From: Macrostomum lignano
Taxonomy: Eukaryota
Assembly (NCBI GenBank): GCA_002269645.1
Contig: NIVC01002264.1
Span: forward strand, 1-64,000
Direction: 5' to 3'
DNA: 64,000 nt
A model generated the notes under the pieces. The model saw only the letters and a list, made by a program, of their open reading frames with translations, did no database searches and was not told the DNA's origin. Below are positions 15,020-54,600 of this stretch, one piece after another; the first letter of the stretch is position 1, and every line of letters begins with the position of its first letter. A program made the translations under genes and the position numbers.

Positions 15020-16670
15020 AGGATATGAAGGGAAGGGATGCTGTAGATATGAAGGGAAGGGATGCTGTAGATATGAAGGGAAGGGATGCTGTAGATATGA
15101 AGGGAAGGGATGCTGTAGATATGAAGGGAAGGAATGCTGTAGATATGAAGGGAAGGAATGCTGTAGATATGAAGGGAAGGGATGCTTTAGATATGAAGGG
15201 AAGAGATGCTGTAGATATGAAGGGAAGGAATGCTGTAGATATGAAGGGAAGGAATGCTGTAGATATGAAGGGAAGGGATGCTGTAGATATGAAGGGAAGG
15301 GATGCTGTAGATATGAAGGGAAGGGATGCTGTAGATATGAAGGGAAGAGATGCTGTAGATATGAAGGGAAGGAATGCTGTAGATATGAAGGGAAGGAATG
15401 CTGTAGATATGAAGGGAAGGGATGCTGTAGATATGAAGGGAAGGGATGCTGTAGATATGAAGGGAAGAGATGCTGTAGATATGAAGGGAAGAGATGCTGT
15501 AGATATGAAGGGAAGGAATGCTGTAGATATGAAGGGAAGGGATGCTGTAGATATGAAGGGAAGGAATGCTGTAGATATGAAGGGAAGGAATGCTGTAGAT
15601 ATGAAGGGAAGGGATGCTGTAGATATGAAGGGAAGGGATGCTGTAGATATGAAGGGAAGGAATGCTGTAGATATGAAGGGAAGGAATGCTGTAGATATGA
15701 AGGGAAGGAATGCTGTAGATATGAAGGGAAGAGATGCTGTAGATATGAAGGGAAGGAATGCTGTAGATATGAAGGGAAGGAATGCTGTAGATATGAAGGG
15801 AAGGGATGCTGTAGATATGAAGGGAAGGGATGCTGTAGATATGAAGGGAAGGGATGCTGTAGATATGAAGGGAAGGAATGCTGTAGATATGAAGGGAAGG
15901 GATGCTGTAGATATGAAGGGAAGGAATGCTGTAGATATGAAGGGAAGGAATGCTGTAGATATGAAGGGAAGGGATGCTGTAGATATGAAGGGAAGGAATG
16001 CTGTAGATATGAAGGGAAGGAATGCTGTAGATATGAAGGGAAGGGATGCTGTAGATATGAAGGGAAGGAATGCTGTAGATATGAAGGGAAGGGATGCTGT
16101 AGATATGAAGGGAAGGGATGCTGTAGATATAAAGGGAAGGAATGCTGTAGATATGAAGGGAAGGGATGCTGTAGATATGAAGGGAAGGAATGCTGTAGAT
16201 ATGAAGGGAAGGGATGCTGTAGATATGAAGGGAAGGGATGCTGTAGATATGAAGGGAAGGAATGCTGTAGATATGAAGGGAAGGGATGCTGTAGATATGA
16301 AGGGAAGGGATGCTGTAGATATGAAGGGAAGGGATGCTGTAGATATGAAGGGAAGGAATGCTGTAGATATGAAGGGAAGGAATGCTGTAGATATAACGGG
16401 AAGAGATGCTGTAGTGCTGTAGATATAACGGGAAGGGATGCTGTAGTGCTGTAGATATAACGGGAAGGGATGCTGTAGTGCTGTAGATATGAAGGGAAGG
16501 GATGCTGTAGTGCTGTAGATATAACGGGAAGGGATGCTGTAGTGCTGTAGATATGACGGGAAGAGATGCTGTAGTGCTGTAGATATAACGGGAAGGGATG
16601 CTGTAGTGCTGTAGATATAACGGGAAGAGATGCTGTAGTGCTGTAGATATGAAGGGAAGGGATGCTGTAG
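15020..16670. repeat. Highly homogeneous 24-bp satellite (GATATGAAGGGAAGGGATGCTGTA) changing to a 32-bp unit at the right end
   Basis: About 57 copies of the 24-bp unit, then units with an extra GTGCTGTA from about 16395. Confidence 0.97.
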
Positions 16671-17229
16671 ACATAATGGAATAATTCTGTGTTAGTAGAG
16701 AACAATAAAGCAGCATAGCAGATTTTATTTTAAAATTTGTCAACAATTTTCGCATTTTTCCGCTATTTTATAATATATATTTTAGATACTCAGCGCAATT
16801 TCTCACAGACGCATATTAAACATCGCAATTTGTCATATTTGCGTAGACTACAGCTACAGATGATTACAATATTACTGTTTAGCAGAAAAACACAAATGCA
16901 AAAAATGATTGCAAAGAATATATTAGTTAATTTTATGAAGGGTCAATTTTTTATAGAAATCAAGCTTTCAAGTCAAAGAGCGGGAGGGCTGCGAGACTGA
17001 CTAAAAGCACGCTAATATTTAAACTATCTGTCTGTAGAACTAAAGTACGAGTAGAATTCAAATTTTGCACGTAGACTTAATTTTTTATAAACTCCAGCGG
17101 AAGCAAAATCTAGCAGAAGCAATTAAGATGCAATAAAGCTCAATTTTACAATTTGACTTTTGAGATTAACAAGCAATAACAGTTAGACAATTGTATGAGA
17201 AAAATAGAGAATTCGATAAGAAAGATTAG

Positions 17230-18020
17230 AAATGAGAATAGGATGAGATAGATGAGAATTCGATGAGAAAGATGAGAAGTAAGAGCTGGATGAGATGGAT
17301 GAGAATTCAACGAGATAGATGAGAAGTGAGAACTGGATGAGAAAGATGAGAAGTGAGAATTGGATGAGAACGATGAGAAGTGAGAGCTGGATGAGAAAGA
17401 TGAGCAGTGAGAATTGAATGAGAAAGATGAGCAGTGAGAATTGAATGAGAAAGATGAGCAGTGAGAACTGGATGAGAAAGATGAGAAGTGAGAATTGGAT
17501 GATAAATATGAGAAGTGAGAACTGGATGAGAAAGATGAGCAGTGAGAATTGAATGAAAAAGATGAGAAGTGAGAATTGAATGAGAAAGATGAGCAGTGAG
17601 AATTGAATGAGAAAGATGAGCAGTGAGAATTGAATGAGAAAGATGAGAAGTGAGAATTGAATGAGAAAGATGAGCAGTGAGAATTGAATGAGAAAGATGA
17701 GCAGTGAGAATTGAATGAGAAAGATGAGCAGTGAGAATTGAATGAGAAAGATGAGCAGTGAGAACTGGATGAGAAAGATGAGAAGTGAGAATTGGATGAT
17801 AAAGATGAGAAGTGAGAACTGGATGAGTTAGATGAGCAGTGAGAATTGAATGAGAAAGATGAGCAGTGAGAATTGAATGAGAAAGATGAGCAGTGAGAAT
17901 TGGATGAGAAAGATGAGAAGTGAGAATTGAATGAGAAAGATGAGCAGTGAGAACTGGATGAGAAAGATGAGAAGTGAGAATTGGATGATAAAGATGAGAA
18001 GTGAGAACTGGGTGAGAAGT
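17230..18020. repeat. 27-bp minisatellite (GATGAGAAGTGAGAATTGAATGAGAAA) directly downstream of the MEMO1 stop codon
   Basis: Direct tandem reading. Confidence 0.95.
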
Positions 18021-18049: not shown

Positions 18050-20035
18050 TTATCGACTGAACAGCGCCCCAGCAGCGTAACTAACAGAAGAATCTTCTTC
18101 ACTGAAACACTTGGACGACTGGGCGTAACGAAGGAAGCGCATTGTCCATCGGTTGCCGCCGCCGGCCGCTGCCAAGGTGGACAACAGCAGAGCTATGGGC
18201 TTTCTGCCGCAGATTGTATTGCCGAAATTGTCCAAATAGTCGGCGAACTGGCCCGCTTCCAGGGACTCGATGGCGCGCATGCCCAGCCGGTCCAGACGCT
18301 CGATGCCTTGCCAGATCGGCTCTCCGGCTCTGCAAGCAATAAAATGTTCGCAGATGACTACTGACAGTAAAAATATTTGCTTTAGTACCAATATTCTAGA
18401 TAAATTCAAACACATTAATTATGGATTCTAAAATCAGAGGATTGTGAAGATTTCGGATTGTGAAGATTGGGGATAGTGAATACCGGGGATTGTGAATATT
18501 TAGGGATTGTGAATATTGGGAATTGTGAAGAATGGGATTGTGAATACTAGGGATTGTGAATATTGGGGATTGCAAGGAATAGGAGTGTGAATAATTGGGA
18601 TTGTGAAGATTAGGGATTTGTGAAGAATGGGATTGTGAATACTAGGGATTGTGAATATTGGGGATTGCAAAGAATAGGAGTGTGAATAATTGGGATTGTG
18701 AAGATTAGGGATTTGTGAAGAATGGGATTGTGAATACTGGGGATTGTGAATATTGGGGATTGTAAAGAATAGGAGTGTGAATAATTGGGGTTGTGAATAG
18801 TAGGGATTGTGAATATTTTTAGGGATTGTGAAGATTAGGGATTGTGAATACTGGGGATTGTGAAGATTAAGGATTATAACTACTTGGGGATCTAAGAATA
18901 GTGAATGAATTCTGCAGTCTATGGCCCAACCTTTGCGGATCTGGATCGCGCCAAGTGTAGCGAAACCGGCGACCCCAGTGGCAGAAGTCGCTGGACACAA
19001 CAAACAACGAGGCCGGGTCCAGCAAGTGAGGAGCCAGCAGGTCGGCGTAGAAAGCAGTCTGGGCAGGGCTGCACTGCCCCACCTAGAGAGCAAGTTTTAG
19101 GTTCGGTTCGGTTGCGCTTTAATACGCTTTATTAGTTAACAATGTGAGGTTTGAAGGAAGTCAGTCAGGTGTAAAATCTACTTCAATAATCAATGCAATT
19201 TCATAACCTAAATGAGTTATAATCCTGTCACAGGTAGACAGAGATAAGCTGTGAGAAATAGACAGAGATAAGCTGTGAGAAATAGACAGATATAAGCCGT
19301 GAGAAATAGACAGATATAAGCCGTGAGAAATAGACAGATATAAGCTGTGAGAAATAGACAGATATAAGCCGTGAGAAATAGACAGATATAAGCTGTGAGA
19401 CATAGACAAGCAGATACAACCCGGTGAGAACATGAACAATCAAAGACGGTAGTAAAACAAACCAAAATTGGCACAACTCCAGCAAATCGTCCGCTAGCCC
19501 GCAGTTTAGCCGTTGCCATAGCAACATAGGGCAATTGCATCTCAACGCTATGCTCAGCTTCGTCGCAATTTCGCGATAATATTTCAAATTTGCCAGCAGA
19601 GTTCAGCGCCGATACGGTGGCCAAATCAACGGCCAAGTCGCCAAGTGGAGTGGCCAGACAGTCGGCAGAGCTGAGGGCGCAGCCGTTCAATCGATAGTGA
19701 TGACTAGGCGCCAGAATGAAAACTCGGACAGGGGCATTGCTACTCAAACTGTCAATAGCCTGAGCCAATAGTCGATAAGAGTAAGCCGCCACAGAGCCGC
19801 TATACCTGTAGCCAGCGTGCGGCGATATGATTGCTTTCAGACTGCCGCAGTTTCTCATATCAACAACTGGATTCGAGGCTCCATCATTATTGTCCTCATT
19901 TGACCCCGATGATTTAGAAGCATTGGCCAGCCAATCGGTTAGTTGCTTCTCTAAAGCAGAGGCATTGTCAGTGTACCAGCTGCCGGCGTGGCTGGCTCTG
20001 CGCTTCCAACTGGAGGCAGCGGCGGTGGCTGACAT
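18050..20035 (-). CDS. MEMO1: Protein MEMO1 (334 aa); exons 20035-19463, 19082-18931 and 18329-18050
   Basis: Motifs [75 protein letters not shown] and [14 protein letters not shown]. All introns are GT-AG and phase-compatible (573+152+280 = 1005 nt). Confidence 0.95.
18435..18868. repeat. Degenerate minisatellite of about 15-16 bp (GGGATTGTGAATATT) filling MEMO1 intron 2
   Basis: Direct reading. Confidence 0.9.
19232..19400. repeat. 24-bp minisatellite (GTGAGAAATAGACAGATATAAGCC) in MEMO1 intron 1
   Basis: About 7 copies. Confidence 0.9.
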
Positions 20036-20388
20036 TTCTCTAGTGAGGCTGCAGTTCAAGATAAAAAATACAAAAATGTATATCCTTGAGGTAGAGCCAC
20101 GGATTGGAGACGGTTTAAGTCTGCAATCTGTCGAAGGTAAGGCTAAACAACAATTTTGGTATTAAATCACGATCGAGTTAGGTAAGATGACAAGATTGCT
20201 TGATTAACCACACCCCTTAAATGTGCAAGAGTTGCTTTACTGTTGCTAACAGTTCATTATTAACTCACAAGAAGTGTGGATCAACTACGTAGCAAACTAA
20301 AGGGCATTTCCAACAATGTCAGTCACCGATGTAGCTGCACTTCATCAATGAACCAATCCCCAAGTTTCCAATTTAAACCCTAGCTGAC

Positions 20389-30841: not shown

Positions 30842-32169
30842 ATGAAGCTCCTGCAAGCTGAATCAGTTGTCGGCTTGATCCTCATCATCGTCTCCATAGT
30901 GACGGGAAGCGCATCGAACTCATCCGGCTTCCTGATGGAGGAAAAAGTGACGGCGTTGATCACTCGTCTGTTGCAGAACTTTGGTTCCAACGGCCGCTAC
31001 GTTTACCCGGAGATAGGCAGCAACCGATCCCAGGTAAACATGAGCTTCCAAATACTGCACTTCTACGGCTTGGACCAGAATGAGATTCTTGAAATCGGCG
31101 TCTGGACGGCCTTTCTGTGGCGTGATCCCCGTCTGGAGTGGAACTCAACCGAGTATGGCGGCCTCAAAGTGATCAAGGTCCCTGCCGACAACATCTGGAT
31201 ACCGGACGTGGGCTTGAGCAACACTAAGAAGGAGAACCAATTCGACTTTCGCCTACTCAAAGCAGTAGAGGCTCTGGTGTATCCAATGGCACAGTCTATA
31301 TTTATTATCACCTGGTAACCACTGTAGCCTGCCCAATAGACGTCATGTTCTTCCCATTCGATTCGCAGAAGTGCGATTTTCAGTTCGGTCCTTGGACCAG
31401 CTACCGCGGTAGCTACCGCATCCACCTGCCCAAGAGCAACATCCGCATGGCCAACATATCCAAGTTCGTCAGCGAATGGGAGATAATAAGTTTCAGCATC
31501 GAGGAAAAAAACTTTTTCGACGATAACGTCAACCAAATGTGGGACTACTTCGAAGTGAAGATCGAAGTCAGACGTAAACCATACTACTACATATTTGTCA
31601 TTGTTGTGCCATTCTTCATGCTGTCCTTCATGGCCTGTCTCATGTTTTTGGCTGACGAAGCTGGCGACCGAGTGAGCATGTCGATCGCAATACTGCTCAC
31701 CATGACACTGTACGTGATGATCACGAGCTCAAGCGCGCCCAAGTCGATGCAGACGATTCCATTGTTGGGCATCTACATCATGATACAAATGGCTCTGCTC
31801 ATCATGTTCACTTTCTTGGCCATTCGCAGCAACCTCAGTGGGGCGGGCGGCGCCGGCCCAGTCATATACTACACCGAGGACGCCAACGGCCTGCTGACCA
31901 AAGTCAAAGAGAAGCGCGTTCGACGGCCGGCTCCTTTGGCGACGTCGACGCCAGGCGGCATGGAATTCGAGACGCCGGCTGGCGGCAGTGCGGCGAGCGG
32001 ACTCGAACTCGAGCACATCAATAGGAAGCCTCGCCGGCCGCCACAGTCGGCCAGACGACGAGAGCCGCAGAGACAAGACTGTTTCTTCATGGCCTTGTAC
32101 ATCGGGCTAACACTGACTAATGTCTGCGTCTGCATGGTTATCCTGCCGGCTGCAAAGTACAGAATGTGA
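30842..32169 (+). CDS. Intronless Cys-loop ligand-gated ion channel subunit (nAChR-like, non-alpha), about 442 aa, with one 1-bp deletion at about 31285
   Basis: Signal peptide, WRDPRLEW and IWIPD motifs. Restoring one A gives VYPNGTV...CPIDVMFFPFDSQKC (C-x13-C loop). Also present: FGPWT, RRKPYYY.....P (M1), GDRVS (M2), M3 and M4. Confidence 0.9.
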
Positions 32170-38011: not shown

Positions 38012-40054
38012 TCACCGAGGCACGTCGATGCTGCACCGAAAATGCGTTCCACCTGCAGCGGATCCGCGCGAGTCGCTCCCGGTGGACGACGGTGACGTGG
38101 ACTGCGTCCGCTCCGAGCCGCTGCACCAGCCGTCCTCCGACACCCTGAATGTGCGGGACCGCCGCACGGCTGGCTGCAGCGGCTGCTTTTTCTGCTGCTT
38201 CGGGCAGTTCCGGCGGTGGCGCCGATTCGGCCGCGCTCGGGCCGTTGAAACAGCGCTGCTGCCAGTTCGAGCGTCTTTGGAGTCGACGAACGCTCTGGCG
38301 AAGTACTTGGTCTCCACCGACTGCTGCGGCTTTTGTCGCTGCAGGGGCTGCGGCGTTGTCGATCTGCGAGTCTTTTGCGTCGGCCGACCTCCCTGCAACC
38401 GCCTTCCAGCACTGCTGCTGCCGTTCGCATTCAGGACAGGTGGCCGCTCCCACGAGCTGTCTTCCTGAAGCGCCTTCGAGGCCTGGCCCGCAAGGCGAGG
38501 GCTCCGCCAGTCGCCGGTGTCGCCGGTGTCGCCTCTGTTGTCGTCTTCCAACTCGTCTGCGGTGACCACCGCGGCCGCAGCGGCGTTGTTCCGGTTTACC
38601 GTGTGCTGCACGCCACTGTGCCGCGTCAGAGCTGCCTGCTGCAGACAGTCGAGCTGCTGCTGCTGCTGCTGGACAGTCTGCCGCGGCTGATCGCCAAAGG
38701 TGGGGCAGGGATCTGCTGGCTCCGGGCAGCGGCAGCCACAGCGGAGGTCCTGCGTGTTGCGATACACCATGGCAGCCATGTGCAGCACGAAGTCGATCTT
38801 GCAGGTCATGAAATTCGGCCGCCACGCACCGCCTGCCCGCTGCTGCATGCTGAGCAGAGTTGGGTCCGGCAGGGCGTTGCGCAGCTCCTTCACTGCGCTG
38901 GGGCTGGCGCCGCACATGCTCAACGTGTCGGCGTAGATCTTCTCAAATAGGCGCATCAGATTGCTGAGCAGGGCGTCCATGTTGGCCACGTACCAGCCGG
39001 CCATGGCCTGCCGGTTGTGACTGCCAGCTGAGGGGTAATTGTACGCCGGTCCTTCGCGAACCTTTGCGGCCTGCTGCCCTGCACCCTGCTGCTGCGCCTG
39101 CGGCCGTAGCGGCGTTGGCGGCTTGCATGGCTGGGGCACCAGGCCGCTGCAGACCGCAGCTCCGCGCTCAGGCACTGACGGCTGCCGAGGCTGCGGCTGG
39201 CAAAACTGCGGCTGCTGCGGCTGCTGGCACTGATGCTGCTGTTGATGCTGCTGCTGAGGCTGCCACTGCTGCTGCGGTGTCTGCCTTACATCGCTGGCTC
39301 TTGGCCACCGGCTGTTGTTGCCAGTAGTTCCACCGCAGCTGGCGCCGTTGCCACAGCAACCGAGTCCGCCTCCGTGCCGAGCAGTCGATCGCGGCGTCTG
39401 CCTGAGTCCCCTTTTGTGGTTGAGTCGGGAGAATGGGCGGCTCTTTGAAAAAAGATAGTACAAAAAGTGGGATTTCGAGTGGGAATTACAGATTTTAAAC
39501 TTCAAAAATATTTTGCTATGTCCTTGGAGCCATTACTAATGGCATTAGCTGTGCAAACTTTGATATCAGTGCGTTCACACTTGCGATAGTCTCTGACGAT
39601 ACTTTTGACTGCTCTCCACCCTCTCGCAGGCACTCCACAGGTGCGCACAGCGAACTCACTGCGAGTTGTTTGACTGGCCGTCCCAGCGCGCGTCGAAGTT
39701 CTCAACGCCGGCGTCGCCGCTCCGACTGGTGCCGCGACTTCGGCCAGGCGTCGCCGTCCGCGAAGACTCCGAGCTGGCGTACTTCGTCTCGCAGCTGCTG
39801 CCGACTGCGCCGTCGCCGAATCCGCCTTGGGCGCCGCTGGTGTCGCAGGCGAGCTCGCGCAGCCGGGCCGCATTGGCGCGGCTGAACAGCAGCTGGACGG
39901 CCCGGCGGATGAGGCGGTAGTGAAGGTCGGCAACGGCCTCGTCAAACAGCTGGCTGCACAGCCGCAGGCCGCCCTTCCACTTCAGCGCGTTGGCAAGGCC
40001 GGGGCGCCGGGCGATCTCCGTCTGCAGGAACTGCTCGAACAGCTTCAGCGACAT
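38012..40054 (-). CDS. Uncharacterised gene with at least two exons (about 40054-39662 and 39445-38012), with Gln-rich tracts and a predicted helical domain
   Basis: ORFs MSLKLFEQFLQTEIARR... and the 497-aa ORF containing YNYP...WYVANMDALLSNLMRLFEK...WRPNFMTCKIDFVLHM. A GTGAGT donor and TTTTCAAAG acceptor are present, but their phases do not reconcile without an indel. Confidence 0.55.
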
Positions 40055-41051: not shown

Positions 41052-44000
41052 TCACGCCTCATCTGAGACGTGCAACACAGCGGATTTGCACCTTCCCACA
41101 ATTTTATCCATTGTCGACGCAGCGGCCTGGCGACTTTGTCTGGACTCCGTCTCCGACGTTTTCAGCGAATCGCCCGTCGACCATGCCGTCGGTTTTGCTA
41201 GCGACGACGAGACAGCGGCAGTGGCGGCGGCGGCGGCGGTGACTGCAGCGGAGGCCGAGACGGCTGCTGAGTCGGCGTGCCCGCTGCACAGGTGAGCCTC
41301 GATGCGGTCCAGCCGCTGGCGCAACTCGCTTAGGGCTTCGAGCACGTCGCCGAATGCTGTCGCATTGACTGCACCGGCCCGATCGCCGCTGCCGCCTCGA
41401 CCGAGCTCTGCCTGACGACCCTTGAGCGCGAAGATTTGGTAAATAAAAAAGTACAAGCAGTTCTTTGGACTAGAGCGCGGCTGAACGCGCTGAACCAGGC
41501 AACGATTGCAACTGTTGAAGATTGTCTTGCAGAGCAGCAGAGGAATGTCCAGCACATTCAATGGGGGAGGAAACGGAGAGCGAGCCTTGAACTCGGCCAC
41601 CAGGTCGTAGCGCTCGAACTGCCAGAGGGCGCGGGATTTATTGTGGATTTCGTCCACTGTCTTGCTAAACAGGGCGATTAACAGGTTCAGCAGCAGCACA
41701 TTGGTGATGATGATGTACACGATGAGAAAGAAGTCCGGCACTACAACCTTTCCAATTTTGTGCGGAGCCGGGCAGTTCTCTTTACCGCAATGATTTTTGC
41801 CCATTATGTTCTCATTGGAGTACTCGCCCAGCATGGTGTAGAATGTGAACCGAAGCATGTTCTCCATAACCTGCAAGTTGAGTAGACAAACATCGTTATT
41901 ATATTTTATTGTTTTTGAAGTACGAGTTTAACAAAGCCTAGATCTTTTTTACTTACATCCATCGAACTAGCGGACTGGTGCGACGCGTCAGTCCCGTTGC
42001 TGGAGAAGGGTGGATACAGCAGGGCTTGAAACGTGACGCCGAAACCCGCCATAAACACCAGTACAATTGACAGGAAAGGAATCAGATCTTGCAGCACCAT
42101 TTTAGATATCATTTTCAGCTGCGGTCCGAGGCTCTCCAAAACAGACAGCACGTACAGCATCCGCATATAGAAAGCCAGCAGAGCAACACAGTACATGATT
42201 CGCGTGTAGTACAAGTTTGTGTGCACCATCTGGGTAACTTGAGTTGCGGAGCAGCTGCACAGATTGTGCTGATGATGATGGTCTGAGTCTGCTGATGAAT
42301 AGCCGAAGCAGCAATAAAGGTGGGTCACCCATCTGATGACCAGTCCAACTGTTGCCGAGCCCAGTGACGCCATGTCCAGCATATTCCACTTACTGGTGAA
42401 GTAGTGATGAAGACTTTTGCTGCGCAGGCTGATCAGAAATTCGCGAACCTCTTCCAGGAAGTAGCCGAAAAGAAAGATGTACAGAACGTACTCCCACAAC
42501 GAGCAGCGTTCCTCAACGTCGAACAGAACGATGCGACTAAGAAGAAGTAGGAAGGCAACGTTGAAGACTGTGTGATACCAGAACTTTGTCGATGGTATTC
42601 CGTAGAAGTCTCGGATCAAAGAAAAATAATACAAACAAGGATTCCGCACCTTGTTGGGAATGATTAGAGTTGCGAGATCATTGTTACAAGCATTGTCATC
42701 GGGATGATGGTCGACAGTCTTTGAGCCGATACCATCGCTGCTGACAGAAGCTGCCCCGACTCCGCTAGAGGCCGCACCTCCAGTGGCGGCAGCAGCAGCA
42801 TCAGCGTTTCGACCGCGAAATATGGATGTTTTGCCGGTACGCTTAAAACCGGACTCAAAAGTCCTTATGCTATAAGATTTGTTGCCGAGACTGCGTTTTC
42901 GAATATTTCGAGTATAGTTGAAGAAAAATGGCAGCGTAATAAAAAATGGCGTCATGCCAGCAAAGAACAACAGAAGTTTCTTGGATCGACGAAACTGGTA
43001 GGTTGAAAGGTACCAGTCGAGGTCCAGGGCCGTCTGACAAACAGGAAGCTGCATAAAGCGCTCTGACTCACCGATGGCCGCCAGATCAATGCAAGAAAAG
43101 CCACCATACCTAGGAAGACCTTCGCGGATGAAGCGCAGCGTTACGGCACTCCTTGGCGACGTGTCCATGTTGCTGCTGACGGTCAGAGCATCAATTACGA
43201 CGCTTTCACACCGGCTGGCGCACTGCAGGAACGGTTGCTCCTGCGTCACGTTAAGACGCGTGTTTTTCAACAATCCACGCAAGAGGACTACCGCAAACAG
43301 TCCCAGTGGAATGATATCCGTTGTTTCCATGCGGAGTAGCAGCTCTGTAAGCTGAAACTTCTCCATCAGAATGGACCAAACGACAAGCGAGCGCAGCGGA
43401 TCCTTCAGCAGCTGATATTTGTCCTTGCTTCCATGCGCTAGATTCACCATAGTTAACTCGCGCAACCAATTGTTCATTTTGTCGAACATTACTTGCCCAT
43501 CGTAGACAAACTGCTCCTTGATGAATGGTATGAAAGTTGTAGAGCATCGAGTTGGACACTGGATGTACAGCTCTGCAATGTTTTCTTCGATAAGCGCCAG
43601 CATCCTCTGCCAGATGCTGCCGCACTCAGTGACGCAATTAACAATGCCGAGATCGTCGCGGTAAAGACCGAACTTCACCACAGCGCCTGTTAGCTGTTGC
43701 AAGCCGGCCTCATCTGAGCGGTTGTGAAGGCGCCGATGGAACCGTAGCAAGCACTGTCTGAGATCGTCCGTATCCAAATTGACAGCGGTCAGAAGGGCAC
43801 GTAGAACTGCAGCTTCTGCTTCGTCGTCGAGCTGTTCCGGCTGCAGCTGCTGACCTCCGCAGCCTGTCATACAGTCCCAGGCCAGTTCACTTCTCTTGCA
43901 CAGGCTGTTAGACCGGCTAATTGTTTTAAGAACCAGCAGCAGCTCGTGATACTTGGGAATGAGCAGAGCGATAGGTCGGGAGTCCGATGAAACCTGTTTA

Positions 44001-45025
44001 GCAAAATAGAGACACAGTTCCCGCACCAATTGCTGGTTGTTGTTGAGCAACAGAAGGTCGATTGGTGTCACACCGGATTTGTCGCAGAGCTCCAACCTGG
44101 CGCCGCGGTCGACCATGTAGGTAAGCAGCTCCATGTTTCCATTGATAGCCAGGATGTGCAGACAGGTCCGACCGTTCGGATCGGATGCGTTGGCATTTGT
44201 GAACTGCAGAAGGCAGTCGATGAGCTCCCGGCGCTCCTCCATAGCGGCGCGGTGCAGCGGCAAGCAGCCGAGCCTGTCACGAGCGTCTGGCCGGGCTCGG
44301 TAGTACAGAAAGATGGTGAGAAATTTTGTGTCCTTGATGGAACAGCAGCGGTGCAAGCAGTAGTCACCATTTGGATAGGGAATGTTTGGATCTGCGCCCG
44401 ACTCCAGCAAGTTTACCACTAGCCGGATATCCTCATTGTTAAGCGCCAGATGCAGCGGAACCAGGCCGCGCTTATTCCGCAAGTTTAACTTTGCGCCTCG
44501 CTTTGCTAGAATCTTGAAAAAGTCTGAGTCGTGGCGCTCTACACTTAGATGGACGACAGTGTTGCCAGTGTTTGTATCTTGCAAATCCAAAGCGCACGAC
44601 CGCGCCATCAGAGCTTCTTGGTACCAGGATTCACCGTCGGTGTACACAGCGCTGATCAGCGGCACGCCGTCATTGTAGAACAGACAGCTGAGGCTGGCGC
44701 CGCGTTGGAGAAGCAAGCTGAACAGAGCCTTGTTGCGCAGCTTGTAGGCGAAAGCCAGCGGTTGCAAGTTGTTCGCCAGCTCTTCATTGAGCAGCTCGGG
44801 GTTCTCGTGAAGTATAGCCTTAACTTCGGAAAGATTGCCAGCAGCCAGTGCCGCTGTCAGACGGTCGCCGAACGGAGAAATCTTAAAGAAGCGCTCCTTG
44901 GTGCGAGACAAGGCAGAGCCAAGACGGCTCTCCCAGTTGCTGGTGCTGCCCTCTGTACCGGCTGTTGTGGTTGCCGGCTCTGCTACTGAAATGGCTGGGT
45001 TGCCACCGCTGTGATGACGAGCCAT
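41052..45025 (-). CDS. TRPM-type cation channel with N-terminal ankyrin repeats (about 1295 aa); exons 45025-41957 and 41870-41052
   Basis: About 8-9 ankyrin repeats (e.g. GNTVVHLSV, GLVPLHLAL, GCLPLHRAA, GRTCLHILA). TRPM-like linker: AAVLRALLT, DPLRSLVVWSIL, GGFSCIDLA. Channel region: FYGIPSTKFW, SKWNMLD, LGPQLKMISKM..DL..FL, GVTFQALLYP, NVLLLNLLIALFS and TRP box WQFERY...EF..R.PFPPP. 86-nt GTAAGT..TTGCAG phase-0 intron. Confidence 0.92.
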
Positions 45026-45644: not shown

Positions 45645-48600
45645 TCACTTCTGTTTGCCTTCCTTCGATTTTACGTCACGTTTTGTCGAGGACTTGTTTG
45701 GAGACCGAATTTTCGACTTGCGATCAGCTGCGGCTGAAGCCTGTGCTGCTTGTTGCGGCCCGTGGGCTGTGCCGTCCTCGCTGCCGCCATAGCGACCGCC
45801 GCTTGTTCGGACAGTTTCGTAGCTCCGCTTCGACCGGAACTGAGAGTCCAGCCCGCCCTCCCGACGGCAGCAGTCGTGCAGGCGCTGATCGCAGCTGCAC
45901 GAACGGGTCAACAGAACTTGTTCCAGCTGTTCGTTGCTGCGATCCAACTGGGCGGTCAGAGCCTCAACAGTCTCCTCCATGTCGCTGTTTCCAGCTGCCC
46001 CAGCACCTGCTGCAGATTGTTTCAGCTCGGCCAATTCAGCTTGCACTTTTGACAAATCGGCGCTGAGACGCGCACGCGCCGTCTGGCTCGCGTCCAGTTG
46101 GCGTCGAAAGCTGAGCAGCCGACGCCGCAGGTCGCGATTCTCCGCCTCGGCCGTCTCTCGCTGGCGCTGCGCTTCTTCTTGGACAGACTCTAGCTGGGCC
46201 GCCTGGGTCTCAAGACGAGCTGCCAGGGAATCGATCGTCTCCTGCAGCTCCTCCGCCAGGCGCCTCCAGTTAGTTGAAGTGTCGGGGCTTTCGGCCTGTG
46301 GGCCTGCCTTTGCATCGATGGATCTAAGAGGGGTAAGTTTTGCGATCACAGTTTTTTGCTATTCTTATGCTCATAGTTTGCCAGCAGTAAGTGATCTTTT
46401 TAGAGCCCGGTCATTATTCATTAAGCTGATGCAATCTCGTGGCTAGCCCCGATGTACATTTATTCAGCTGTCCAGCGGCACAAAGATTGAACAGTGCTAT
46501 TGGTGACCCAGCTACTGGTTGGTGATACTTTCCCACGTTGCTGAACTCTGTGCCGTCACGGATACTAAAATAACTAGATAGGCCACTCTGAACTGGCATA
46601 ACTTAGCAAAACAGCTTTCTACTTTCAGTTCAGTAGCAAAGAAGAATACAAAAGCGATTTTATAAAATAAAGGCAGCTGAAATGACTTTGATAAGTTTAG
46701 AAGCCCACGAGTGGAACTCCTCCTCTGGAGGAGAAAGGGGAAGAACTCCCATCACCGGAATTCTGAAGGGGAAGAACTCCCATCAGCTGAAATTCCATGA
46801 CTTGAATCCCATCTTCCAAATCATCTCCAAATCCTCTACAATGCATTTCAATTACCGGATATCTAGTTTTCCCTATTTGCAAAAACTCACTGGCATTGTC
46901 CAGACTCGGACTCTCATGTCTCTGCTCTCATTTCTCATATCTCATATCTTTCATATCACCCTCTCCTTTCTTATCTTCCATCTTTCTGCCCTCCTTACTA
47001 CCGTCTCTTGTCACCTCTCTTTTCTCTCCTCTCCATTCTTTCTTCTCCCCTTTCCTTTCTCCTCTCATCTTTTCCCCTCTCTTCTCAAATCTCTCTCTCT
47101 CTCTTTTCTCACTTATCTCTTTTCTATTTGCATCTCTCATCTCTCATCTCTCTCCTCTCATCTGTACTATCTTATTTATCTCTTCTCCCAGGTCTTTCAA
47201 ATTTACTCTCTCCTGTCTCCTCTCTCCCCTCGTCTCTCCTCTCTCATATCTCTTCTCTACTCACTTATCTATTCTCTCTACTCTGCTCCCCTTTTACACT
47301 TTCCTATATGCTCTCACTCTCACTCTCTCCTTTCTTATCTCCTGTTTTTACTTTCCTTTCTACCACCTGTCTCCTCTCGTTTCTCTCCTCTCTGCACTCT
47401 TATCTTTACCCTCTTCTTTTCCCTCACTACTTTCTTCTCTTAAATCTCTGATCTCCGATCTTTCATCTCTCTCCTCTCACCTCTCACCTCTCTCCTCTCT
47501 TTCCTCTCTTCTATTGCCTCTGTGCGCTCTTATCCCTCTTTTCTTCTCTGTCCTGTCTCCTCTCTGCTATCTCATATCTCCTCTCTCATATCCTCTTCCT
47601 TCATCTCCTCTCTCCTCTTCTCTTCTCTCTCCTTCGTTCCCGCCTTACTTCCCTCTTCTCTCCCATCTGTCATGTCTAATCTCTCCACTCATTTCTACTC
47701 TGTTTTCTATCATCTCATCTCTCTTCTCTTTTCATTCTTCTCTTTACTCTCTTCTCTGACTGATTGAAGATGCCAAATCCATCAAGATCCTCTCCGCGCG
47801 AAGCAGAAATCCTGTCCGTGCAACTGAAAACCATCGAAATCCTCTCCGTGAAACTGGACTCCTTCGAAATCCTCTCCTTGAAACTTAAATCCATCAAAAT
47901 CGTCTCCATAAAACAGAAATCAATCATAAATTATCTCTGCGAAACAGAAATCCTCTCCGTGAAGCTGAACATCATCGAAATCCTCTCCGTGAAACTGAAC
48001 ACCATCGAAATCCTCTCCACGAAACAGAAATCCTCTCCGTCAAAATTAAAACATTGAAATTGAAACTGGACTCAATCAAAATTTTTCCGTCAAACAACTC
48101 AACTCTCCGGATTCATTGGTTAGGGTTAGGGTTAGGGTTAGGGTTAGGGTTAGGGCACAGCTTCGTGTTAAAAGGCACTGATAAAAATATTGAACTAATT
48201 GAATCAATTCACTGCGCAACCGAATTCACAGTCAGTCAGTATCAGTCTCAGTTAAAGTTAACAAAAACATTGCGCAATCTAAATCAACCCTCCAATACAC
48301 AGCAGCAGTGAGAAGTTGAACCCTCCCCCAACTTTATCTATTCGTCTCGCAAAACTGAGTACAATTTTTGCAAAGTTAAAAGTATGCAAATAGTTTTTTA
48401 AATGCTGTGCTTTTTCTTTTCATATTTAAAGCAAACAACTTATATCCCGAACTCAGCGTTGCAAGATCTTTCCAGCAATATAAGTTTCTCCTCTCAAAGT
48501 TTAAAACTCGAGGAACAGTTAGCGTTTGAAATTTACCGATTTCCCGACTGCTTGCTAGAGAAGCTCGCAATTCATTGAATTTCACTGCCAAACTAATACA

Positions 48601-51600
48601 CAGGGCTGCCTATAGAAAAAAGGCGCCAATAATAAAACCAATTGAATCTCGACACAGTCTATCTGTTTACACTGTACAACTGCTATGTACACTCAGCCCA
48701 AGCCCAACCCCCCAGTCTGGGGGAATCATTAAATTGAACTTAACCCCCCAACACGCGGGGGGTTTTATTTGCATTGAACGCAGAACACGCGCACCCACCA
48801 CCCCTCAATACACAGCGGCCCGCGGGCGGAGGTTGGGGTGGCTATTTTTACAAACTGGCTGAAGCCCCAGGCAGAGTGACCAAAGAAGGTTATTGGGGGT
48901 TAAAAAAGCAGTTTTCTGCTTTTTTAGGGATGTTAAAATGTGAAAATTAAAAATTAAAATAGCCTAAAGCCTGCTCCGGAAAATTTGCAGTTTTCCCATA
49001 TAAGTTTCGACGTTGACTTGGCAGAATTGTAGGAGTTCACTTGCTACATACAGACAGACAGACATACAGACAGACAAACATCGCGTCGGTTTTAGTATTA
49101 GGAGGACGAGGCCAACTCCTCCTCTGGAGGAGAAAGGGGAAGAACTCCCATCACCGGAATTCCATTCCCTGAAATCCATCAGCTGAAATTCCATGACTTG
49201 AATCCCATCTTCCAAATCATCTCCAAATCCTCTGTAAAGCCTTTCAAATACCATATCTTGTTTTCCCTGTTCGCAAAAACTGACTGCCATTGTCCAGACT
49301 CAGATTCTTCTGTCTCCTCTCTTCTCTTTTCTCTCCTCTCACGTCTCTCATCTCTACCACCTTATTTATCTCTTCTCCCTCGTCTTTCGTCTTTCTCTCC
49401 TGTCTCCTTTATCCCCTGTTTTCTCCTCTCTCCTCTCTTCTCTCCTCTCTCATCTCTCATCCCTCATGCCTCATCTCACTATTTCTTTCTCCTCTACTCT
49501 CAGCTCCTCTCTTCTCTCTCCTCTCCTCTCTCCTGTCTCCCTCTGCTATCTCATATCTTCCCTCTCATCTCCTCTCTCCTCTTTTCTTCTCTCTCCATCT
49601 TCGTTCCCGCCTTACTCCCCTCTTCTCTCCCATCTGTCATGTCTAATCTGCCCTCTCTCATCTCTACTCTCTTTTCTATAATCTCTTCTCTCTTCTCTTT
49701 TCACTCTTCTCTTTACTCTCTTTACTGACTGACTGAAGATACCAAATCCATCAAAATCCCTCCATGAAACAGAAACCCTCTCCGTGAAACTGGACTCCTT
49801 TCGAAATCCAATCCGCCAAACAGAAATCCTCTCCGTGAAACTGGGCTCCATGGAAATCCTCTGAGTGAAACTGACATCCATCAAAATCGTCTCCGTAAAA
49901 CAGAAATACATCTAGATTCTCTCCACGAAAAAGAAATCCTCTCCGTGAAACCGAAAACCATCAGAATACTCCGTGAAACTGGACTCAATCGAAATTTTCT
50001 CTGTCAAAAAGAACTTAACTCTCAGAATTCATTGGTTAGGGTTAGGGTTAGAGCTGCACAGAGCTGCGTGTTGAATTAATTGAATCAATTAATTGCGCAA
50101 ACCATTTCTCAGTCAGACAGTATCAGTCTTATTTAAAGTTAAATAAACGGTTGCGCAATCTAAATCAACCCTCCAATACGCAGCGGCAGACCCCCTTCCA
50201 ATACGCCCAACTTTATCTATTACGTCTCGCAAAACTGAGTACAATTTTTGCAGAAAGTTAAAAGTATGGAAATAGTTTTTTAAATGCTGTGCTTTTTCTT
50301 TTCATATTTAAAGCATACAACTTATATCCCGAACTCAGCGTTGCAAGATCTTTCCAGCAATATAAGTCTCTCCTCTCAAAGTTTAAAACTCGAGGAACAG
50401 TTAGCGTTTGAAATTTACCAATTTCCCGACTGCTTGCTAGAGAAGCTCGCAAGTTTATTCATTGAATTTCACTGCCAAACTAATACACAGGGCTGCCAAT
50501 AATAAAACCAAATGAATCTCGACACAGTCTATCTATTTACACTGTACAACTGCTATGTACACTCAGCCCAAGCCCAACCCCCGTTCTGGGGGAAGCATTA
50601 AATTTAACTCGACCCCCCCAACACGCGGGGGTTTTATTTGCATTGAACGCAGAACACGCGCACCCACCACCCCTCAATACACAGCGGCCCGCGGGCGGAG
50701 GTTGGGGTGGCTATTTTTACAAACTGGCTGAAGCCCCAGGCAGAGTGACCAAAGAAGGTTATTGGGGTTAAAAAAGCAGTTTTCTGCTTTTTTAGGGATG
50801 TTAAAATGTGAAAATTAAAAATTAAAATAGCCTAAAGCCTGCTCCGGAAAATTTGCAGTTTTCCCATATAAGTTCCGACGTTGACTTGGCAGAATTGTAG
50901 GAGTTCACTTGCTACATACAGACAGACAGACATACAGACAGACAAACATCGCGTCGGTTTTAGTATAAGGACGAGGCCAACTCCTCCGCTGGAGGAGAAA
51001 GGGGAAGAACTCCCATCACCGGAATTCCATTCCCTGAAATCCACTAACTGAATCCCATCATCCAATTCCTCACCGCAAAACTGAACACCATCGAAATCCT
51101 CTCCGCGAAACAGAAATCCTCTCCGGGAAACTGAACTCCAAGGAAATCCTCTGCGTGAAACTAAAATCCATCAAAATTGTCTTCGTAAAACAGAAATACA
51201 TCAAAATTCTCTTCACGAAACAGAAATCCTCTCCGGGAAACTGAACTCCAAGGAAATCCTCTGCGTGAAACTAAAATCCATCAAAATTGTCTCCGTAAAA
51301 CAGAAATACATCAAAATTCTCTCCACGAAACAGAAATCCTCTCCGGGAAACTGAACTCCAAGGAAATCCTCTGCGTGAAACTAAAATCCATCAAAATTGT
51401 CTCCGTAAAACAGAAATACATCAAAATTCTCTCCACGAAACAGAAATCCTCTCCGGGAAACTGAACTCCAAGGAAATCCTCTGCGTGAAACTAAAATCCA
51501 TCAAAATTGTCTCCGTAAAACAGAAATACATCAAAATTCTCTCCACGAAACAGAAATCCTCTCCGTGAAACTGAAAACCATCGAAATCCTCTCCGCAAGA

Positions 51601-54600
51601 CAGAAATCATCTCCAAGAAACTGAAAACCCTTGAAATTCTCTCCGTGAAACTGGACTCAATCGAAATTTTCTCCGTCAAAGGGAATAAACTCCCAGGATT
51701 CAATGGTTAGGGTTAGGGTTAGGGTTAGGGTTAGAGCTACACACAGCAGCGTGTTGAAAGGCGCCGATAAAAAAATTGAACCAATTGAATCAGTTGAATG
51801 CGCAACCAATTTCATAGTCATTCAGTATCAGTCTCGGTAAAATTAGGAAAAAAAGTTGCGCAATCTAAATCAACCCTCCAATACACAGCGACCGACCCCT
51901 TCCAATACGCAGTGAAGGTTAGAAATTCAACCCCCCCCCCCTAACTGTTGGGGTGTCGGTCGAACCCCCATTGAACCCGTAAAATGAGTACAATCTTTGC
52001 AGAGAGTTAAAAGTATTGAAATATCGTCTTTGCTTTTGCTTTGCTTTTTGCTTTCATATTTAAAGCAAACAACTTATATCCTCGAAGTCAGCATTGAAAG
52101 ATCTTTCCAGCAATATAAGTCTCTTCTCTCAGAGTTCAAAACTCGAGGAACAGTTGGCGTTTGAAATATCCCAATTTAAAGCATTGAACTATCGAGTGTA
52201 CGCATACGTGCACTGCCTGCTAAAAAGGCTTGCAAGTTTATTCATTGAATTCCACTGCCGCCCCAGCACCCTCAACTTAGGGGGGTTTGGTTAAGTTCTC
52301 AGTGCACACAGTTGTGGCGCAATCGCTAAAATTGATGTCAACCGGCCCAGCTTACACCCCTTCAGTTGAAAGAATACACTGCACAGATAGGCCGGCTGTT
52401 GTGGCGCAATAATTGTAAATTACGCAAGATGTTCATATTCCCCTATTGTTTTTCTATTTCTGCTTTTTTAGGGATCTTAAGACGTGAAAATAAAAAATTG
52501 AAATAGCCCACTGCCATCCTCGGAAAATTTGCAGTTTTCCCATATAAGTTTCAACGCTGACTTGCAAGTCGTCTAGGAGGAGATGTGTATCACACAAACA
52601 GACAAACAACGCACCAACTTTAGTATTAAGAGTGGAACTCCTCCTTCGGAGGAGAAAGGGGAAGAACTCCCATCACCGGAATTCTATTCCCTGAAATATC
52701 CATCAACTGAAATTCCATGTCTTTAACCCTATCTTCCAAATCGTCTCCAAATTCTTTACAAAATCTTTCAAAGACCATAGCTCAAAGACTCTCAAGTCTC
52801 TCATATCTCCTCTCTCCTCTCTCTCATCTCATCTCTACCCCTGCTCCCTTATTTATCTCTTCTCCCTCGTCTTTCGTCTGTACCTTCTCCTGTCTTCTGT
52901 CTCCTCTCTTCACTCTTATCTCTCCCTCTTCTCTCCTCTCTCATATGTCATCTCTACTCACTTATCTATCGTCTCTCTTAACCCTCTCTCTCTCTTCTCT
53001 TTTCTCTTCTCTCTGCTCTCATTTCTCATATTTCATATACGCTCTGACACTACTTTCTTGTCTCCCATCTTTCTTCCTCCTTTTCACTATCCCCTGTCTC
53101 TTCTCTTCTCTCTTTTCTATTCTCTCCATTCTCTCTTTTCTCATTTCCTTGCTCCTTTCATCTCTCTCCTCTCTCCTCACTCTCTTCTCCTTTCGCTTCT
53201 CTCTCCTCTCTCTCTCATCTTTACTACCTTATTTATATCTTCTCCTTAGTCTTTCGTCTGTACTCTCTCCTGTCTCCTCTCTCCCCTGCTCTCTCATCCC
53301 TCATCTCCTCATCTCACTCTTTCTTTCTCCTCTACTCTCCCCTCTCTTATATTGCCTCTGTACGCTCTTATCCCTCATCTATTCTCTCTCCTATCATCTC
53401 CAATCTGTCATGTCTAATCTCTCCACTCAATTATACTCTGTTTTCTATCATCTCTTCTCTCTTCTCTTTTCAGTCTTCTCTTTACTCTCTTCTCTGACTG
53501 ATTGAAGATGCCAAATCCATCAAGATCCTCTCCGCGAAGCAAAAATCCTGTCTGTGCAACTAAAAACCATCGAAATCCTCTCAGTGAAACTGGACTCCTT
53601 CGAAATCCTCTCCTTGAAACTTAAATCCATCAAAATTGTTTCCATAAAACAGAAATCAATCATAAATTATCTCCGCGAAACAGAAAGCCTCTCCGTGAAG
53701 CTGAACATGATCGAAATCCTCTCCGTGAAACTGAACACCATGGAAATCCTTTCGTGAAACTGAACATCATCGAAATCCTCTCCACGAAACAGAAATCTTC
53801 TCCGTCAGAATTTAAACATTGAAATCGTCTCCGTTAAACTTGACTTAATCGAATTTTTTCCGTCAAACAACTTAACTCGCCAGATTCATTAGGGTTAGGG
53901 TTAGGGTTAGGGTTAGAACTACGCACAGCTTCGTGTTAAAAGGCACAGATAAAAATATTGAACTAATTGAATCAATTCATTGCGCAACCGATTTCACAGT
54001 CAGTATCAGTCTCAGTTAAATTTAACCAAAAGATTGCGCAATTTAAATCAACCCTCCAGTACACAGAGACCGACCCCTTTTCAATACGCTGTGGCAGTTA
54101 GAAATTGAACCCCCATCTGTTGGGGGCATTGAACCAAAAAATGAGTACAATCTTTGCATAAAGCTAAAAGTATGGAAATAGTTTTTTTGATGCTGCTCTT
54201 TTAGTCTTTATATTGAAAGCTAACAATTTATATCCTCGAACTCAGCGTTGCAAGATCTTTTCAGCAGTATAAGTCTCTTCTCTTAAAGTTTAGAACTCGA
54301 AGAGCAGTTAGCGTTTGAAAGTTTCCGTTTTAAAGCATTAAAATATCGAGTGTACGTTCACTGCCTGCCAAAGAGGCTCGCAAGTTGATTCATTCATTAC
54401 ACAGGCCGGCTATTACACAGGGCAGCGTATTGAAAGGCACAGATAATAAAACAAATTGATGGTGCAACCGATTTCACAGTCAGTCAGTATCAGTCTCAGT
54501 TAAAGTTAACAAAAACATTGCGCAATCTAAATCAACCCTCCAATACACAGCAGCAGTGAGAAGTTGAACCCTCCCCCCAACTTTATCTATTACGTCTCGC

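Follow-up and report, generated by a model that had tools for sequence, protein, structure and literature searches.

The closest described relatives of the gene analysed here, BOX15_Mlig007500g6 (below Mlig007500g6), are channels of parasitic flatworms. The gene lies at positions 41052-45025, on the minus strand, of a 64,000-nucleotide stretch of a Macrostomum lignano contig (NIVC01002264.1), the whole of which we call the window. The Schistosoma mansoni channel TRPM_MCLZ (Smp_333650), which is the meclonazepam target, was cloned by Park et al. and has N-terminal "multiple ankyrin-like repeats", Ca2+ signals, and a linear current-voltage relation with reversal near 0 mV (PMC10788528). Sprague et al. 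described Sm.TRPM_MCLZ as having ankyrin-repeat modules instead of MHR1/2 or SLOG (PMC11731825). Rohr et al. 2026 reported 63 orthologues in parasitic flatworms, named the group "TRPM-like" for its N-terminal ankyrin repeats, and placed the clade "next to" other TRPMs (PMC12861061). The same work described TRPM_MCLZ genes of three exons, the third of which holds the entire channel domain, and a duplicated channel exon in Opisthorchis. It also found that the equivalent of Sm H831 is invariant in the 63 parasitic orthologues, and that a Tyr at the S4 site of H946 accompanies low meclonazepam sensitivity in S. japonicum and Fasciola (PMC12861061). Strong homologues of Smp_333650 are found in planarians as well (Schmidtea, 32% over 1101 aa, 1.4e-150; supplementary table, PMC12058154). 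For TRPM and TRPS in general, Himmel et al. 2020 inferred that the loss of ankyrin repeats preceded the separation of TRPM from TRPS and that both families are ankyrin-free (PMC7306681).

In this study, we found that the locus is a real, intact two-exon M. lignano gene for a TRPM-type channel with ankyrin repeats. We assign it to the flatworm 'TRPM-like' clade typified by S. mansoni TRPM_MCLZ, with a probability of roughly 0.85. The minus-strand open reading frame (ORF) 45025..41906 has 1039 codons, and its stop at 41906 is reached by read-through of an intron. The donor GAT/GTAAGT follows codon 1023, with the exon ending at 41957 and the intron running from 41956. At the acceptor, TTGCAG/GTT, the intron ends at 41871 and exon 2 starts at 41870, after which the frame is open to the stop at 41052-41054. 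The spliced model is 100% identical, over the full length, to the annotated Macrostomum lignano protein P0001 (BOX15_Mlig007500g6). This identity indicates that the source is a free-living flatworm, in line with the flatworm origin implied in a preliminary description made from the DNA letters, and that the model agrees with the public annotation. Paralogues align without gaps over the splice junction, the ORF is intact over 1295 codons, and every conserved family column is kept. We also considered a further C-terminal intron and rejected it, since the C-terminal tail (FFIYQIFALKGRQ..., coil) aligns with the Opisthorchis felineus orthologue and an extra intron is unnecessary. The features of the gene are as follows (S1-S6, transmembrane segments; pLDDT, predicted local distance difference test).

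41052..45025, minus strand: whole coding region of the ankyrin-TRPM-like channel gene BOX15_Mlig007500g6, 1295 aa plus stop
41957..45025, minus strand: exon 1 (codons 1-1023), with the N-terminus, ankyrin array, linker, MHR4-like region, S1-S5 and pore-loop start; from the uninterrupted frame and the GTAAGT donor directly after 41957
43991..44866, minus strand: ankyrin-repeat array, aa 54-345, 8-9 repeats; from Pfam, PDB matches and the AlphaFold model
43421..43990, minus strand: helical linker, aa 346-535, which includes AAVLRALLT; its sequence is specific to the family, and any likeness to MHR3 is in the fold; from profile comparison and fold search
42908..43420, minus strand: MHR4-like region, aa 536-706 (DPLRSLVVWSIL, GGFSCIDLA...CQ...W); from PF25508, hhalign and BLASTP
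42656..42907, minus strand: pre-S1 linker, aa 707-790, low-complexity (Ala/Gly/Ser-rich) and predicted to be disordered; pLDDT about 27-40 in the model
41957..42595, minus strand: S1-S5, aa 811-1023, voltage-sensor-like domain with H818, N822, Y855, E859, E862, N881, D884, R955 and Y958; from nvTRPM2 and family alignments, model helices and residue mapping
41871..41956, minus strand: intron of 86 nt (GTAAGT...TTGCAG) within the loop between S5 and the pore helix; from the splice sites and a paralogue alignment that is continuous over the junction
41052..41870, minus strand: exon 2 (codons 1024-1295 plus stop), with the pore helix, selectivity filter, Cys pair, S6, TRP helix and C-terminal tail; from ORFs, splice sites and the spliced translation
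41583..41870, minus strand: pore helix, filter FYTMLGEYS, Cys pair C1051/C1056, S6 and TRP helix (aa 1024-1119); from Pfam Ion_trans, PDB TRPM matches and alignment
41607..41624, minus strand: TRP box WQFERY (aa 1106-1111); from the translation and family alignment
41289..41354, minus strand: short C-terminal coiled-coil-like helix FGDVLEALSELRQRLDRIEAHL (aa 1196-1217); from sequence, aligning with DYTEAFEQLNQRLAQLEA of O. felineus

The type of the channel body was clear from comparison with known structures. When the body without its ankyrin repeats was searched against all PDB sequences, the 60 best matches were TRPM chains (60/60, E 1.2e-34 to 2.9e-18), and no TRPC, TRPN, TRPA or TRPV chain was among them. 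The top match was Nematostella TRPM2 (nvTRPM2, 1.2e-34), followed by TRPM3, 1, 8, 2, 4, 5 and 7. The Foldseek top 50 contained TRPM2/3/4/7/8 over about 810-890 aligned columns, plus NOMPC, whose match arises from the ankyrin repeats alone (template modelling score, TM, 0.27). A pore-loop Cys pair and a W-K/Q-F-x-R-Y TRP box are hallmarks of TRPM channels. In Mlig007500g6 the Cys pair lies in HCGKENCPAPH (C1051/C1056), in alignment columns common to canonical TRPMs, and WQFERY at 1106-1111 is followed by RSPFPPP at aa 1120. Further channel motifs are FYGIPSTKFW at aa 807, LGPQLKMISKMVLQD at aa 966 and GVTFQALLYP at aa 996, and the N-terminal half contains AAVLRALLT at aa 405, DPLRSLVVWSIL at aa 542 and GGFSCIDLA...W at aa 641-671. 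These results support a body of TRPM type, not of TRPC, TRPN or TRPA type.

We also compared the protein with the usual definitions of the TRP subfamilies. It has the S1-S6 and TRP helix nearest to TRPM, the Cys pair and the TRP box of a strict TRPM, whereas the presence of SLOG/MHR1-2 and the absence of ankyrins that belong to that definition (PMC7306681) are not found in it. From TRPC it differs in having no TRPC Pfam domain and in its TRP box, WQFERY rather than EWKFAR. From TRPN it differs in having 8-9 repeats rather than about 29, with NOMPC matched through the ankyrin repeats only. Judged by domain content alone, it also departs from TRPS, which has SLOG, usually Nudix, and no ankyrins (PMC7306681), because it carries ankyrins and neither SLOG nor NUDIX.

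The N-terminal half of Mlig007500g6 sets it apart from canonical TRPMs. Pfam identified Ank_2 (1.3e-23), Ank (2.4e-18), Ion_trans and PF25508, the TRPM2-like domain, of which positions 133-255 matched aa 530-658 with 29.9 bits (cutoff 27). Neither SLOG, NUDIX nor kinase domains gave a Pfam match, and LSDAT_euk (PF18139) had none at E<=1. Phmmer searches with three flatworm SLOG domains left Mlig007500g6 unmatched, and most full-length canonical TRPMs in the set were matched. The PDB matches of the ankyrin part were ankyrin, DARPins and NOMPC; because single-repeat phmmer was too insensitive for ankyrin repeats, multi-repeat queries and Pfam were used instead. For aa 40-1200, an AlphaFold model based on an alignment of 24 family sequences (mean pLDDT 71; predicted TM score, pTM, 0.64) contained six regular 33-residue helix pairs (pLDDT about 85-92) and 2-3 weaker N-terminal ones, which gives 8-9 repeats.

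We then compared the family N-terminal halves with 20 canonical SLOG-TRPM N-termini by hhalign. Only aa 536-706, the MHR4 part, found a counterpart (99.5%, E 2.6e-23), and neither aa 346-535 nor the ankyrin repeats gave a significant match to the 20 N-termini. Consistently, the BLASTP alignments to a TRPM_MCLZ orthologue and to a SLOG-TRPM both begin in the MHR4-like region. In a separate model of aa 340-711 (pLDDT 74), the top 50 of the fold search were TRPM chains only, over about 300-370 aligned columns (TMq about 0.5), so that the modelled fold makes an MHR3-like linker at aa 346-535 plausible. The preliminary description had placed an array of 8-9 repeats at about 44870-44000, in the position of a missing MHR1/2 and before a TRPM-type S1-S6 region, with no NUDT9-H or kinase domain. 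We found the array at 44866-43991 and recovered this whole layout, and the TRPM motifs, pore Cys pair, TRP box and C-terminal coil-like helix quoted there are all present in the spliced translation. Its mention of MHR3/4-like motifs needs division: the MHR4 part holds, whereas the region of AAVLRALLT resembles the TRPM helical region by fold only.

To find the relatives of Mlig007500g6, an exhaustive HMMER search of 1.84 billion representatives was carried out with the ankyrin-less body as query, and 1797 matches were obtained. In a separate homology search with the full-length protein, generic ankyrin proteins dominated the results. The top-scoring set was separate from ordinary TRPMs, and the top matches checked with Pfam all had Ank, a weak PF25508 and Ion_trans, and no SLOG. 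These ankyrin-only proteins come from M. lignano (at least 17 Mlig identifiers, forming at least 11 clusters, or paralogue groups, at 50% identity), from the trematodes Opisthorchis viverrini/felineus, Dicrocoelium dendriticum and Fasciolopsis buski, from the cestode Schistocephalus solidus, and from the monogenean Protopolystoma xenopodis. Among the public models of the M. lignano paralogues, several are fused or truncated, such as P0005, with a fatty-acid hydroxylase domain, P0278, with an integrase, and P0289, which has double length. P0133 (Logan contig DRR639838_5415, 1298-4516) is a complete ankyrin-only member of 1072 aa and branches with the parasitic-flatworm subclade.

Neighbour joining of 125 channel domains, with Kimura distances over 291 columns and 200 bootstraps, placed the ankyrin-only proteins in a single clade with no SLOG protein inside (191/200). 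Within it, an M. lignano-only subclade, to which Mlig007500g6 belongs, adjoins a Neodermata subclade of trematode, cestode and monogenean proteins (176/200). The N-terminal halves of the two subclades were matched by hhalign with 100% probability (E 1.6e-70, 680 columns), and this colinearity covers the ankyrin repeats, the linker and MHR4. This indicates that the architecture arose once, before the split of Macrostomorpha and Neodermata. The nearest neighbour of the ankyrin-only clade was a flatworm SLOG-TRPM clade (200/200), which includes TRPM_PZQ-sized proteins; the link between the two was found in 76/200 replicates. Rooting with the TRPA-like P0098 was unstable: in 83/200 replicates this outgroup attached to the ankyrin clade, and in 117/200 it attached elsewhere.

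The TRPM_MCLZ orthologues were recognised by their names, by the Opisthorchis model with the duplicated exon, and by the exact published residue spacing. In the Neodermata members, the distances from the S1 His, +37 to the S2 Tyr and +116 to the S4 Arg, are exactly those published for Sm.TRPM_MCLZ, and the S4 site varies as published, with Tyr in flukes and Phe in cestodes (PMC12861061), so that these members can be identified as TRPM_MCLZ orthologues. P0124 has two Ion_trans regions because the channel exon is duplicated in Opisthorchis (PMC12861061). Over aa ~530-1147, BLASTP gave 27% identity between Mlig007500g6 and the Opisthorchis orthologue (2e-55), and 28% between Mlig007500g6 and an M. 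lignano SLOG-TRPM (7e-57), which is thus about equally distant. We regard Mlig007500g6 as one of many M. lignano co-orthologues of TRPM_MCLZ. The preliminary description had suggested a potentially new TRP subfamily and had named an already described clade of the same architecture as the finding that would speak against it. The TRPM_MCLZ clade is such a clade (PMC10788528, PMC11731825, PMC12861061), and Mlig007500g6 groups in it; therefore, the suggestion does not stand. What is new here is the large expansion of the ankyrin-only family in a free-living flatworm, the pocket differences of this paralogue, and the TRPMs that combine ankyrins with SLOG, described below.

Compared with TRPM_MCLZ, Mlig007500g6 has the same N-terminal ankyrins, TRPM-type S1-S6, TRP helix and C-terminal helices, and likewise no SLOG/MHR1-2 and no C-terminal enzyme domain. 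Five of the six drug-pocket residues are kept (H818, Y855, E859, R955 and Y1111, corresponding to Sm H827, Y864, E868, R943 and Y1117); the mapping was made through the parasitic orthologues and not on the Smp_333650 sequence itself. At the S4 drug-sensitivity site, Y958 takes the place of Sm H946, and Tyr is likewise present in Fasciola and S. japonicum, which predicts, by analogy with these species, a low meclonazepam sensitivity of Mlig007500g6. The two also differ in several respects. Mlig007500g6 is not a one-to-one orthologue (about 27% identity over aa 533-1147), its S2 motif is E-x-x-E rather than the E-x-x-Q of the TRPM_MCLZ orthologues, and its filter is LGEYS, with Gly, rather than FE-S/FD-G.

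With canonical TRPMs (Nematostella TRPM2 6co7, TRPM3/4/7/8, flatworm TRPM_PZQ), Mlig007500g6 has in common the MHR4-like region, the pre-S1 segment, the LGPxLxM S4-S5 motif, a voltage-sensor-like domain with the E/N/D Ca2+-site positions, the pore Cys pair, the W-x-F-x-R-Y TRP box and a proline-rich post-TRP segment. It differs in having 8-9 canonical ankyrin repeats instead of SLOG/MHR1-2, and in having no NUDT9H, no kinase and no MHR3 recognisable by sequence. According to the nvTRPM2 alignment, the positions that bind Ca2+ in TRPM2/4/5/8 correspond to E859, E862, N881 and D884 of Mlig007500g6; at the second of these, canonical TRPMs have Gln.

Several observations weigh against the assignment to the TRPM_MCLZ clade. 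The sixth pocket position is N822, where Sm.TRPM_MCLZ has its second S1 His, H831, and a 21-residue insertion, absent from TRPM_MCLZ, lies between S3 and S4. The gene consists of two exons, and its intron interrupts the pore loop; TRPM_MCLZ genes have three exons, with the channel in exon 3. The neighbour-joining tree rests on 291 columns and lacks a reliable outgroup. In this highly duplicated genome, Mlig007500g6 could also be a copy that is degenerating or only weakly expressed. Moreover, we infer the ion selectivity, Ca2+ dependence and ankyrin role proposed below from conserved residues and from the schistosome relative.

Two other explanations concern the protein itself. It might be a TRPC, TRPN or TRPA channel with a merely TRPM-looking transmembrane part, because its order of ankyrin array, helical linkers, S1-S6 and TRP helix is also that of TRPC and TRPN (NOMPC), and NOMPC ranked second in the Foldseek search with the whole model. 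But that fold match, with its TM of 0.27, is owed to the ankyrin repeats, and the number of repeats (8-9) differs from about 4 in TRPC and 29 in NOMPC. The transmembrane and linker sequences are of TRPM type, with PF25508, the WQFERY box, the TRPM Cys pair and the LGPxLxM motif all present, the TRPC-specific Pfam domain and the EWKFAR box not found, and none of these other families represented among the 60 best sequence matches. We therefore regard this explanation as next to impossible. A chimera produced by assembly or annotation, or a pseudogene copy in decay, would find some footing in the high duplication of the M. lignano genome, in the fused or truncated paralogue models such as P0005 and P0278, and in the divergent N822, S3-S4 insertion and low-complexity pre-S1 linker. 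Against this, one open exon of 1023 codons encodes the ankyrin array together with the channel as far as S5, the frame is intact over all 1295 codons with the conserved family columns kept, and the same architecture recurs in at least 17 M. lignano loci, in trematodes, in cestodes and in a monogenean. In addition, a schistosome relative has been cloned and works (PMC10788528). A chimera or pseudogene is thus very improbable, and the view of the preliminary description that the fusion is no gene-model artefact, being inside a single exon, is upheld by its recurrence in many paralogues and species.

The remaining explanations concern how the ankyrin-only architecture came about, and here a further group of flatworm proteins is relevant. 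We found SLOG-type TRPMs with ankyrins N-terminal to LSDAT_euk in M. lignano (P0146, P0307), Clonorchis (P0185), Opisthorchis (P0324) and Schistosoma mekongi (P0323), with Ank_2 scores of 32.9-37.3 bits (cutoff 27.3). These ankyrin-SLOG TRPMs (Mlig003066/Mlig025325 in M. lignano; 'TRPM2'-named in Clonorchis/Opisthorchis and Schistosoma) have N-terminal canonical ankyrins as in Mlig007500g6, but, unlike it, a full SLOG and a full-length PF25508 between the ankyrins and the channel. They contradict the published view of TRPMs as ankyrin-free, and they are a possible intermediate toward the ankyrin-only architecture. Since they exist, loss of SLOG from an ancestral flatworm TRPM with ankyrins before SLOG is an alternative route to an exchange of MHR1/2 for ankyrins. 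In its favour, the five proteins have above-cutoff Ank_2 before LSDAT_euk and fall in the nearest, weakly supported neighbour clade of the ankyrin-only proteins. However, their ankyrins showed no specific similarity to those of the ankyrin-only proteins in a comparison in which generic ankyrins scored higher, the sister relationship was recovered in 76/200 replicates, and the linker at aa 346-535 has no sequence counterpart in SLOG-TRPMs. We consider the loss of SLOG doubtful, if still a serious candidate. The ankyrin-only proteins might instead be an ancient TRP subfamily, sister to TRPM plus TRPS, that kept ancestral group-1 ankyrins, with SLOG replacing the array in the TRPM/TRPS stem. The monophyly of the clade without SLOG proteins (191/200), the TRPA-like outgroup joining it in 83/200 replicates, the weak grouping with flatworm SLOG-TRPMs (76/200) and the ankyrin loss before the TRPM-TRPS split proposed by Himmel et al. 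2020 (PMC7306681) would fit such an origin. On the other side, all named ankyrin-only members are flatworm proteins, the non-flatworm TRPMs that occur within the best 150 of the 1797 matches include no ankyrin-only protein, and the point tree sets the clade beside flatworm TRPMs. The placement of the outgroup is as expected from long-branch attraction and is unstable, falling elsewhere in 117/200 replicates. Such an origin is improbable, and it would in any case concern a clade that earlier work has described. There is likewise little chance, in our estimate, that the ankyrin-only clade is older than the flatworms, whether as an early TRPM/TRPS branch with ancestral ankyrins or as a stepwise product via ankyrin-SLOG TRPMs. 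If this were the case, the paralogue groups of M. lignano, at least 11 in number, would make this free-living worm a tractable model of sensor-domain exchange in a TRP channel.

As a member of the TRPM_MCLZ clade, Mlig007500g6 would form a tetrameric, non-selective, Ca2+-permeable cation channel, by analogy with Sm.TRPM_MCLZ. Its LGE filter has an acidic residue after Gly, and the TRPM pore disulfide pair is retained. Gating would proceed through the cavity between S1-S4 and the TRP helix, which keeps most of the TRPM_MCLZ pocket residues and the TRPM Ca2+-site positions. Lacking SLOG, the channel would make no use of the MHR1/2 ADP-ribose/nucleotide site, and the ankyrin array is therefore most likely a cytoplasmic scaffold or tether for contacts between subunits or with partners.

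The window also contains other features around the channel gene. Directly upstream of it, a coiled-coil ORF (45645-46349, minus strand) has weak Golgin_A5/Filament similarity, and downstream of it lies a GC-rich (64%), Gln-rich ORF with no Pfam match (38012-39505, minus strand). The ORF at 31345-32169 (plus strand) encodes the C-terminal part of Neur_chan_LBD and Neur_chan_memb, which are domains of Cys-loop ligand-gated channels. A gene for a neurotransmitter-gated channel probably has one of its exons here. Ordinary neighbouring genes are represented by an exon of a Memo-like protein (19217-20059, minus strand; PF01875, 4.6e-33) and by an RRM-containing ORF (9423-10751, minus strand; PF00076, 4.5e-11).

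Repeats account for a further part of the window. Large purine-rich minisatellites are located at 15022-16670, 17207-18018 and 18439-18891. Their units are 24 bp (58 copies, 96% identity), 27 bp (31 copies) and 16/32/47/95 bp long. These minisatellites cause an extreme GC skew of 0.4-0.6 and long spurious ORFs on both strands. A CT-rich tract at 46.7-47.8 kb similarly produces long Ser/Leu/Phe-rich pseudo-ORFs, and downstream of this tract we found tandem repeats of about 110 bp with the core GAAATCCTCTCCGTGAAAC at 47866-48054, 51089-51592 and 53572-53840.

TRPM_MCLZ is a validated anthelmintic target that has so far been studied in parasites only. The presence of its family in Macrostomorpha, shown here, and in planarians (PMC12058154 supplement) means that the family predates parasitism. 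The annotation of Mlig007500g6 can be changed from 'hypothetical protein' to 'TRPM_MCLZ-like channel', and the ankyrin-SLOG TRPMs bear on the published view that TRPM and TRPS are ankyrin-free. The natural variation at drug-pocket positions is informative for pharmacology, and the large expansion in M. lignano suggests sensory diversification. As a laboratory flatworm in which transgenesis is possible, M. lignano offers a free-living system for studying the stimulus of these channels and the function of their ankyrin array.

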